A DNA stretch of 64,000 nt from Oikopleura dioica (GCA_907165135.1 OU015566.1:14384001-14448000), one strand, 5' to 3'; positions 28,932 to 30,646 are shown, counted from the stretch's first letter. Numbers and translations: made by a program. The notes: generated from the letters alone by a model not told the origin.

Positions 28932-30646
28932 TCAAAGAACGTATCCTTGAGCAATCATCGCATCGGCCACAATTTTGAAGCCAGCGCAGTTGGCGCCGAG
29001 CTAGAATTTCGATGAGAAAATGAGCAAAAAAGGACGATTGTACCTGATAGTCGCCTTCATGACCGAGTTCTTTGGCGGTTTCAGAACACGCTTTCCAGAT
29101 GCTAGCCATGATTCCTTTGAGTTTGTTGTCGACCTCGTCTCTTGTCCAGAAATATCGAGCAGAGTTCTGAGCCATTTCAAGGCCGGAAACTGCCACTCCT
29201 CCAGCATTGGCGGCCTAGAAAAGACCATGATTTGAGTTTGACGAAAAGAACTGACCTTTGCTGGGAAGAAAACAGCCTTGTTTCTTTTGAAGACTTCGAT
29301 AGCTTCTGGAGTAGAAGGCATGTTCGCGCCTTCAAAGACGTATTTGACTCCAGCGGCGATGAGACTTTCCGCGTCTTCCTTGCTGATTTCGTTTTGAGTG
29401 GCGCAAGGAAGGGCGACATCGGCAGCTCCGACGCCCCAAGGTCGAGTTCCTTTCAAAAATTGGACGGTTTCGGATTTGTAGTCTGCCACTCGGCCTCGTT
29501 TATTGTTCTGAAAAATGAGTTTTAGCTGAACGATACTTTTAAAATGTAAACGAACCTTGATATCAAGAACTTGTTGAATCTGCTCATCCGAGAACCCATT
29601 TGGCTCATAGATCGTTCCATTCGAGTCCGAGAACGTCAAAACTTGAGCTCCGAACTCTTTGCATTTGATGGCAGCGTATTGGGCGACGTTTCCAGAGCCA
29701 GAAATAAGAACCTTTTTTCCTTCGAGAGAAACGCCAAATTCATCGACGCAGTTTTTCAAGGCATAAACGCAGCCAAAACCGGTCGCTTCTGGTCGAATCA
29801 GCGAACCGCCCCAGCCGTGGCCTTTTCCGGTCAGAACGCCGGAGTGATCACCTGATTTTTGAAATGAAAAAAAAAGACGGAAAGGGTTTCTTACCTTGCA
29901 TTCTTTTGTACTGTCCATACATGTATCCAATTTCCCGGCCGCCGACTCCGATGTCTCCTGCAGGGACGTCAACATCTGGGCCAATGTATCGCGAAAGTTC
30001 GGTCATAAACGACTGTGTAAATCGCATCACTTCGGCGTCCGATTTTCCCTTGGGGTCAAAGTCGGAGCCTCCCTTTCCGCCGCCCATGGGGAGCGTAGTT
30101 AGGGCGTTTTTGAAGATTTGCTCGAAACCGAGGAATTTGATGATGGACAAATTGACGGAGGGGTGGAAGCGAAGGCCGCCCTTGTAAGGTCCTAAAATTG
30201 GGATAAGCCTTGTTGTTTTCGATAATTGGAAAAATGGGCTTACCGATGGCTTGGTTGAATTGGACTCGGAAACCTCGGTTCACCTGCATTTTGTTGTTGT
30301 CGTCCAGCCAAGGCACGCGGAATTGGATGACCCGCTCGGGCTCGCAGATTGCTTCCAAAACCTAATGGAGAAATGGTCTTATTCTGACTGTTTTTGGAGC
30401 ATTTCAGATTCACAAGAAATGAAAAATGAGGGTTTTTAGTTTAGCAGAACCTGTATTTTAGCTGTTTTTTATAAATTTATGGTCAAAATCGTCATATTTA
30501 CGGTATTTTACCTTGACATAATGCGGGTACTTGTCAAAAAGCGGCCCCAAAGAGTCGAAGACTTCCTCAACTGCTTGAAGAAACTCGGTTTGGTTGGGAT
30601 CTCTAGCCTTAACTTTCTCAAATGCGGCGGCCACTTCTGCTCTCAT
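28932..30646 (-). CDS. gdhA: GdhA-type (NADP-specific class) glutamate dehydrogenase, 7 exons, 445 aa
   Basis: Exons 30646-30512, 30361-30244, 30191-29895, 29851-29556, 29507-29256, 29214-29044, 29000-28932 total 1338 nt; all six introns are GT-AG. Motifs [94 protein letters not shown]. Confidence 0.95.

Follow-up and report, generated by a model that had tools for sequence, protein, structure and literature searches.

Glutamate dehydrogenases (GDHs) of a type foreign to animals have already been described in tunicates, in work published in 2026 on Ciona. Tamura, Oda-Ishii and Satou (GBE 2026, PMC13390645) listed the Ciona gene KY21.Chr5.102 as a candidate for horizontal gene transfer with 'Bacterium' as its possible source; its product has no antenna, and the gene is active in larval neurons, in endoderm and in numerous tissues of the adult. 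They also report a second Ciona GDH gene, of the metazoan (GLUD) type, and give the KY21.Chr5.102 type for tunicates only, in six species, with no other metazoan found in a survey of NR. Oikopleura does not appear by name in the main text, but since its proteins are in NR, Oikopleura dioica is probably among the six. The protein of KY21.Chr5.102 probably corresponds to XP_009858550.1 (P0181). Here we analyse a GDH gene of O. dioica, located on the minus strand at positions 28932-30646 of a stretch of 64,000 nucleotides (GCA_907165135.1, OU015566.1:14384001-14448000), the whole of which is referred to as the window.

An earlier note, made from the window's sequence, had proposed that the gene was a domesticated horizontal acquisition or, alternatively, a rare retention. 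Our analysis makes it likely that a functional GDH of the GdhA class was acquired in the tunicate stem and was passed on by vertical descent. For a rhizarian-like eukaryotic source the chances are close to even, and such a source is better supported here than a bacterial one or than vertical retention. In the proposed sequence of events, the gene would have come into the tunicate stem from outside the animals, ahead of the split between appendicularians and ascidians, would then have gained spliceosomal introns and trans-splicing, and would have been inherited vertically under strong constraint.

Phylogenetic position and source of the gene

Relatives of the O. dioica enzyme with 75-81% identity are encoded by mRNA-sized contigs from plankton metatranscriptomes. 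Two of them belong to other appendicularians, because their mRNAs carry the Oikopleura spliced leader: the P0003 mRNA (protein 79% identical) contains the last 23 nt of the leader, and the P0011 mRNA (76%) has all 40 leader nt behind the cDNA cap adaptor, as well as a poly(A) tail. A search with P0024, a member of a group at 70% identity, retrieved the 'NADP-specific glutamate dehydrogenase' of Ciona intestinalis, C. savignyi, Styela clava and Clavelina lepadiformis. Among the named hits of three lists (the best 120 of 8000 matches in each) the only animals were tunicates.

A tree of 89 rows and 461 columns was built with IQ-TREE under LG+C20+F+G4 (posterior mean site frequency, PMSF), and supports are given as ultrafast bootstrap / SH-aLRT (the Shimodaira-Hasegawa-like approximate likelihood-ratio test). 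To its input 80 named bacterial and archaeal loci were added, together with relatives of a choanoflagellate GdhA, and the 29 prokaryote rows were selected as those nearest to the query. Neither long branches nor compositional outliers were flagged in this tree. The O. dioica protein was placed in a tunicate-type clade (24 rows, 98/92) that contains the two Ciona species, Styela, Clavelina and the leader-confirmed appendicularians, and within which ascidians join a group named UNK3 (8 rows, 100/95) and appendicularians a group named SL2 (16 rows, 99/91). The O. dioica GDH is therefore orthologous to the NADP-GDHs known from Ciona, Styela and Clavelina, and the gene predates the appendicularian/ascidian split. 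The tree was also inspected for a broad metazoan clade that would include the gene, and a tunicate-wide clade was found instead. Thus the idea of a domesticated acquisition gains from a tunicate-wide clade lying among protists, while the gene turns out to be old, not specific to Oikopleura and already published.

The tunicate-type sequences group with Rhizaria (35 rows, 100/97). Columns L36, Q82, L416 and A428 (DLG...QLGANAAGF region) are near-exclusive to tunicates and Rhizaria, and no column was found to be exclusive to tunicates and bacteria, or to tunicates and other eukaryotes. As Foraminifera and Cercozoa are the closest sampled relatives, a rhizarian-like protist, or an unsampled relative of one, is a likelier source than a bacterium. 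The rhizarian rows are labelled Nonionella stella (two genes), Bolivina argentea, Rosalina sp. and Ammonia sp., from two projects, with the addition of a contig of a cercozoan metagenome-assembled genome whose GDH gene has three introns of its own. Rosalina and Ammonia (MMETSP) back the foraminiferal label independently. It was also observed that P0188 (Nonionella stella) and P0266 (Bolivina argentea), both taken by EukProt from one source study, show no difference throughout the aligned region, which may be due to cross-contamination or to a shared associate.

Direct transfer from a bacterium to the tunicate ancestor, in which case the protist relatives would go back to separate transfers from similar bacteria, appears unlikely. 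GdhA is frequently transferred between lineages, bacterial GdhAs reach 60-68% identity (P0032, in a Bacteroidota context, is an example), and in PMC13390645 the Ciona protein is grouped with bacterial proteins. Nonetheless, all 29 sampled prokaryotes fall on one side of a branch supported at 99/88, apart from each of the 60 eukaryote-type rows, and no signature column is common to tunicates and bacteria alone. In approximately unbiased (AU) tests (LG+F+G4, 46 rows x 448 columns) the grouping of tunicates with prokaryotes was rejected (delta lnL 90, p-AU about 0.001), and when 5.8 billion proteins were searched, tunicate- and protist-type matches outranked bacteria. The published tree drew on NR, which is poor in rhizarian sequences.

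Vertical retention, whereby the ancestor of opisthokonts and animals already had a eukaryote-type GdhA that all animals but tunicates then lost, is quite improbable. It is in keeping with the eukaryote-type GdhAs forming one group apart from the prokaryotes, and the GdhA-class enzymes of the choanoflagellate Diaphanoeca and of Kickxellales fungi indicate that the class existed in opisthokonts. However, both are placed elsewhere among the eukaryotes and do not group with tunicates; joining tunicates with the choanoflagellate alone gave a delta lnL of 64 (p-AU 0.03), and joining them with all opisthokonts a delta lnL of 113 (p-AU <=0.001). Retention would also require many independent losses across Metazoa, and no animal other than a tunicate was found among the named sequences in the best 120 of 8000 matches of the three lists or in the NR survey of PMC13390645. 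That the gene came from a microbe or prey organism as a contaminant or assembly artefact is practically excluded, for although the protein class is typical of microbes, this is contradicted by six short GT-AG introns of host size, host-like GC content at third codon positions (GC3), RNA-supported junctions, the occurrence of the gene in three independent O. dioica assemblies, animal-type neighbours, the Oikopleura spliced leader on the mRNA and orthologues on ascidian chromosomes.

Among the sequences without a species name, an additional observation was made. The mRNAs of P0024 and P0033 share their first 21 nt, AGTCTCAAGTCGAACTTACAG (L009:1-21 and L190:1-21), after which their untranslated regions are unrelated, and the two proteins are only 76% identical despite this common start; L189 is the un-trans-spliced form of the P0033 mRNA. 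The shared segment looks like an undescribed spliced leader. The marine group that it comes from, with a GDH nested next to the appendicularians, may be fritillariids or some other pelagic tunicate. Neither this second spliced leader nor a leader of Fritillaria turned up in literature searches, and a search of metagenome contigs with P0024 returned bacterial-type contigs only, at <=63% identity, and no locus of the UNK3 or SL2 type.

Enzyme class and predicted location

The spliced product of 445 residues is identical, at 445 of 445 positions, to the public Okinawa protein CAG5108697.1 (P0122, OKI2018_I69.chr1.g3913), and the motifs quoted for it in the earlier note are present. Being identical to the spliced model, P0122 was used as the reference full-length protein in later protein searches. 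The note's placement of the product in the GdhA/NADP-GDH class, and not in the GLUD1 type, was borne out. P0122 scored 702.9 bits against the NCBIfam equivalog PRK09414 (cutoff 536; profile positions 5-445 of 445) and carries PF02812 and PF00208, the two-domain ELFV architecture at full length. Exon 3 matched PDB structures of the GdhA class (from Plasmodium, E. coli, Corynebacterium, Clostridium symbiosum and Aspergillus) at about 170-183 bits, as compared with about 56 bits for GLUD1. The whole protein scored 561 bits against E. coli GdhA structures, and no GLUD1 chain was among its PDB matches at E<=1e-50. A full-length alignment with E. coli K-12 GdhA shows 59% identity and only 5 gap positions, and the O. 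dioica protein therefore has no antenna. The O. dioica enzyme is thus an antenna-less GDH of the GdhA class (GDH50s, small hexameric; EC 1.4.1.4).

In 125 alignment columns at least 97% of 88 relatives agree, and the O. dioica protein keeps all of these columns. They include K88, K112, K124 and D164, which, from the roles described for the C. symbiosum and E. coli enzymes, we take to be catalytic and substrate-binding residues, with the Asp as general base. K124, the lysine of GGGKGG, aligns with E. coli K128. In E. coli GDH the determinants of NADP use are a GSGXXA turn with Ser at P2, Asp263/Ser264 (P7/P8) and K286/R289/R292 (PMC12364357). Their counterparts in O. dioica, G235-SGNV-A240, D259/S260 and K282/K285/R288, all match E. 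coli, and the enzyme is accordingly predicted to use NADP(H), and to do so strictly. It would function as an NADP(H)-dependent hexamer-type GDH that interconverts 2-oxoglutarate, NH4+ and NADPH with glutamate. It would also be free of allosteric antenna regulation, and the choice between ammonium assimilation and glutamate breakdown would be set by substrate levels.

The earlier note had further stated that the product has no mitochondrial leader, and indeed the O. dioica GDH, when aligned with E. coli GdhA, does not extend beyond it at the N-terminus. Like bacterial and protist GDHs, the proteins of O. dioica and of the two leader-confirmed appendicularians begin 14 residues before RDPNQxEF. 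Because it has no N-terminal extension, the O. dioica enzyme is probably cytosolic, and we infer from its NADP determinants and missing presequence that it could serve in cytosolic ammonium assimilation. The Ciona GDH has 50 extra N-terminal residues, with 7 K/R and 1 D/E, and that of Styela has 63. In five GDHs of the oikopleurid clade (P0002, P0004, P0005, P0009 and P0010) the N-terminus is longer by 13-30 residues, of which 4-5 are K/R and none is D/E. These ascidian and oikopleurid-clade extensions, rich in K/R and poor in acidic residues, are presequence-like, with a composition that mitochondrial presequences typically have. The clusters of the long oikopleurid-clade GDHs also contained short isoforms that begin at the following Met, and the long P0010 mRNAs had no spliced leader, which suggests that the alternative 5' ends of these mRNAs serve dual targeting. 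The other tunicate GDHs may then be dual-located or mitochondrial. Among the mRNAs of the oikopleurid-clade clusters (L019-L022) both leaderless long forms and short forms were seen, and for O. dioica only the short form.

When source and location are taken together, a transfer from a rhizarian-like protist to the tunicate stem, followed by a diversification of targeting into forms with a presequence that are probably mitochondrial (ascidians and some oikopleurids) and a purely cytosolic form with a trans-spliced leader (O. dioica), has a little less than an even chance of being correct. The direction and the donor are what we infer from the tree, and a number of points speak against them. The published analysis gives a bacterium as the source. 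The AU tests used a site-homogeneous model, and their constrained searches ended at about 70 iterations. The sister relation of the tunicate clade to the group of Cercozoa and the second Nonionella gene is weak (84/56), and the GDH family is 60-70% identical everywhere, so that its signal is limited. Foraminiferal transcriptomes can hold prey or contaminant sequences, and the rows of the first Nonionella gene and of Bolivina do not differ. Alternatively, the gene may have passed from tunicates to Rhizaria, or both may have received it from a third source. The absence of the gene from other animals is based on name-bearing hits and on the survey of PMC13390645. In addition, UNK3 and SL2, which lie inside the tunicate-type clade, consist of marine sequences that bear no species name; the AU test of a grouping of the known tunicates without these two groups gave a delta lnL of 19 (p-AU about 0.004). 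As for location, the presequence-bearing relatives mean that a cytosolic enzyme is not a clade-wide trait, and both cofactor and location are predictions from sequence.

Gene structure and expression

The gene occupies 28932-30646 from start to stop codon, which is the span of the public model (OU015566.1:14412932-14414646, 1715 bp). When its 7 exons are joined they give a coding sequence (CDS) of 1338 nt, with 445 codons and a TGA stop. All features given below are on the minus strand and follow gene order. Exon 1 (30512-30646, 135 nt) starts with the ATG at 30646-30644 and encodes residues 1-45, matching PRK09414 positions 5-46. It is followed by intron 1 (30362-30511, 150 nt, phase 0), exon 2 (30244-30361, 118 nt) and intron 2 (30192-30243, 52 nt, phase 1). 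Exon 3 (29895-30191, 297 nt; PF02812, E=1.3e-40) encodes the substrate-binding and dimerisation domain, with the GGGKGG motif and K88, K112, K124 and D164, and intron 3 (29852-29894, 43 nt, phase 1) separates it from exon 4 (29556-29851, 296 nt), where the NAD(P)-binding domain starts and where, by PF00208 and the E. coli GdhA alignment, the GSGNVA turn, D259/S260 and K282 are found. Intron 4 (29508-29555, 48 nt, phase 0) is stop-free in frame, and therefore a 327-residue open reading frame (ORF) is found mechanically at 29001-29984. Exon 5 (29256-29507, 252 nt) carries K285 and R288, as aligned with E. coli, and is followed by intron 5 (29215-29255, 41 nt, phase 0, before A367), exon 6 (29044-29214, 171 nt), intron 6 (29001-29043, 43 nt, phase 0) and exon 7 (28932-29000, 69 nt), which contains the QLGAN..AGF signature region and ends with the TGA at 28934-28932.

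In Pfam comparisons made exon by exon, the exons covered ELFV_dehydrog_N positions 1-31 and 34-128 and ELFV_dehydrog positions 1-82, 84-167 and 168-218, and they covered PRK09414 positions 5-445 gap-free across every joint. Since the profile matches of the exons join without gaps, the splice model is exact. The six introns, all GT-AG as claimed in the earlier note, are 29-37% GC, whereas GC makes up 51% of the CDS and 40.5% of the window. A search of public proteins with the stop-free ORF 29004-29984, which runs through exon 4, the in-frame intron 4 and exon 5, found the annotated O. dioica proteins; its matches were scored on residues 45-242. Three independent O. dioica assemblies contain the gene, two of them on scaffolds (148 kb and 538 kb) and one on a chromosome record of 14.5 Mb, and the Norwegian protein CBY24069.1 differs from the Okinawa product at 15 residues.

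RNA was mapped on 28700-30800, using three oligo-dT RNA-seq runs labelled O. dioica (X8-X10) and a marine metatranscriptome (X1). The RNA depth tracks the exons, exon 1 included, and falls to zero within introns 1 and 4 and past the stop codon. All six introns have RNA support, four exactly and two (introns 2 and 3) with small offsets, which arise because the runs come from a divergent cryptic lineage that is <90% alike to the window. At intron 1 an X1 contig joins 30359 to 30510 (cut +2), reads of X8-X10 bridge the intron with a 4-nt offset, and the depth is zero in the bin 30404-30474. Reads of X8-X10 skip intron 2 from 30189 to 30242, with an offset of 2 nt. At intron 3 loose read ends at 29849 run on into exon-3 sequence, and 7 X9 reads bridge 29843 to 29899. 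The junction 29507-29556 of intron 4 was seen in an X1 contig and in reads, with a depth of about 0 in the bin 29481-29551, and that of intron 5, 29213-29255 (cut +1), was present in all four runs. Intron 6 was spliced from 29000 to 29044 in 205, 219 and 80 reads of X8, X9 and X10, respectively, and in an X1 contig.

The GC3 of the gene is 0.54, and that of neighbouring ORFs is 0.40-0.60. The O. dioica spliced leader is a sequence of 40 nt (PMC6883708). Three Atlantic-lineage mRNAs (L016-L018, metatranscriptome contigs) have an uninterrupted CDS, and the 3' part of the leader lies 6 nt before their ATG. By analogy with them, the Okinawa-lineage mRNA is presumably trans-spliced at a candidate acceptor, ttttcag (30662-30668, minus strand), located 15 nt upstream of the ATG. 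When the Okinawa gene was compared with the Atlantic-lineage mRNAs, dN (nonsynonymous divergence) was 0.030, dS (synonymous divergence) about 1.3 and omega about 0.02; the gene is intact and under strong purifying selection. The dS of about 1.3 corresponds to a divergence at the species level, which fits the cryptic species of O. dioica reported in the title of PMC11067885. In coding sequence, most of the X8-X10 data, although labelled O. dioica, stay below 90% identity to the window.

Genes on both sides of the GDH gene carry CUB and Kringle domains, which are of animal type. Together with the chromosome-scale record, the RNA and the spliced leader, these host-type neighbours uphold the note's view that the gene is not a contaminant. 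The gene is chromosomal, has tunicate orthologues and has RNA support, the three features by which genuine genes are told from contaminants in PMC13390645. Directly upstream lie three near-identical CUB-type genes in tandem (31700-36520, minus strand), in which a 113-residue ORF is repeated at 31756-32097, 33264-33605 and 35571-35912, with larger ORFs at 32100-32764, 33599-34204 and 35915-36502.

Intron positions

Exact splice maps were made for the 6 introns of O. dioica, the 9 of Clavelina (the sole ascidian mapped) and the 3 of the cercozoan gene. The comparison with protist introns suggested in the earlier note was thus carried out, and none of the three cercozoan introns shared a position with those of O. 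dioica or Clavelina. O. dioica and Clavelina have one intron in common by position and phase, namely intron 5, in phase 0 before A367 (FFPAK|AANAGG). About 0.04 coincidences are expected by chance from 6 x 9 comparisons over approximately 1335 sites. Because the site resembles a proto-splice site, this gives modest support to an intron-bearing common ancestor of the tunicate GDH. Oikopleura is known for intron turnover, which agrees with the small number of common positions. In the C. savignyi model H2YRT5 (P0194) a 9-residue insertion, MMTGYVSLC, was observed near O. dioica residue 420, close to a phase-1 intron of Clavelina; it is probably an unspliced intron, in which case that position is common to both ascidians.

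Comparison with known systems

Well-supported horizontal gains of core metabolic enzymes are rare in animals, cellulose synthase being the textbook case of a horizontally gained gene in tunicates. Tunicates would thereby have, next to the allosteric GLUD-type enzyme, another GDH that is unregulated, which could matter for the nitrogen economy of fast-growing filter feeders. The present results refine the published case in that the gene is older than the deepest tunicate split, its nearest relatives among protists call a bacterial donor into question, and its predicted location varies among tunicates.

Ciona KY21.Chr5.102 is, like the O. dioica gene, antenna-less and of the GdhA class, chromosomal, intron-bearing and expressed, and both are in the same clade. 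The O. dioica protein lacks the presequence-like N-terminus of about 50 residues seen in Ciona. Of the six intron positions of the O. dioica gene only one recurs in an ascidian (Clavelina), and in the Atlantic O. dioica lineage the mRNA is trans-spliced to the Oikopleura leader. Whereas PMC13390645 gives a bacterial source for the Ciona gene, Rhizaria are placed next to the tunicate clade here.

The GDHs of Foraminifera and Cercozoa (Nonionella stella, Bolivina argentea, Rosalina sp., Ammonia sp. and Cercozoa sp. M6MM, MES1913127.1) are the closest outside tunicates, with about 65-69% identity; the introns of the cercozoan gene match no tunicate intron, and the rhizarian proteins are known as sequences alone. 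E. coli GdhA (P00370; PDB 4fcc, 3sbo) is of similar length (447 residues, compared with 445 in O. dioica), has the same catalytic and NADP residues and is also antenna-less, but the bacterial gene has no introns, and L36, Q82, L416 and the QLGAN motif are nearly confined to tunicate and rhizarian-type sequences. The mitochondrial GDH of the metazoan GLUD1 type (PDB 1l1f, 3etd) belongs to the same ELFV superfamily and catalyses the same reaction, and differs from the O. dioica enzyme, which has neither antenna nor leader and whose exon 3 scores 56 bits against GLUD1 and 180 against the GdhA class.

The tunicate cellulose synthase, CesA, which PMC13390645 also cites, is the classic horizontally acquired gene of this group and is found in both ascidians and appendicularians. 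Like the GDH, it is a gene of foreign type that became fixed before tunicates radiated. CesA is bacterial in type and provided a structural novelty, whereas the GDH is an enzyme of central metabolism whose nearest relatives are eukaryotic.

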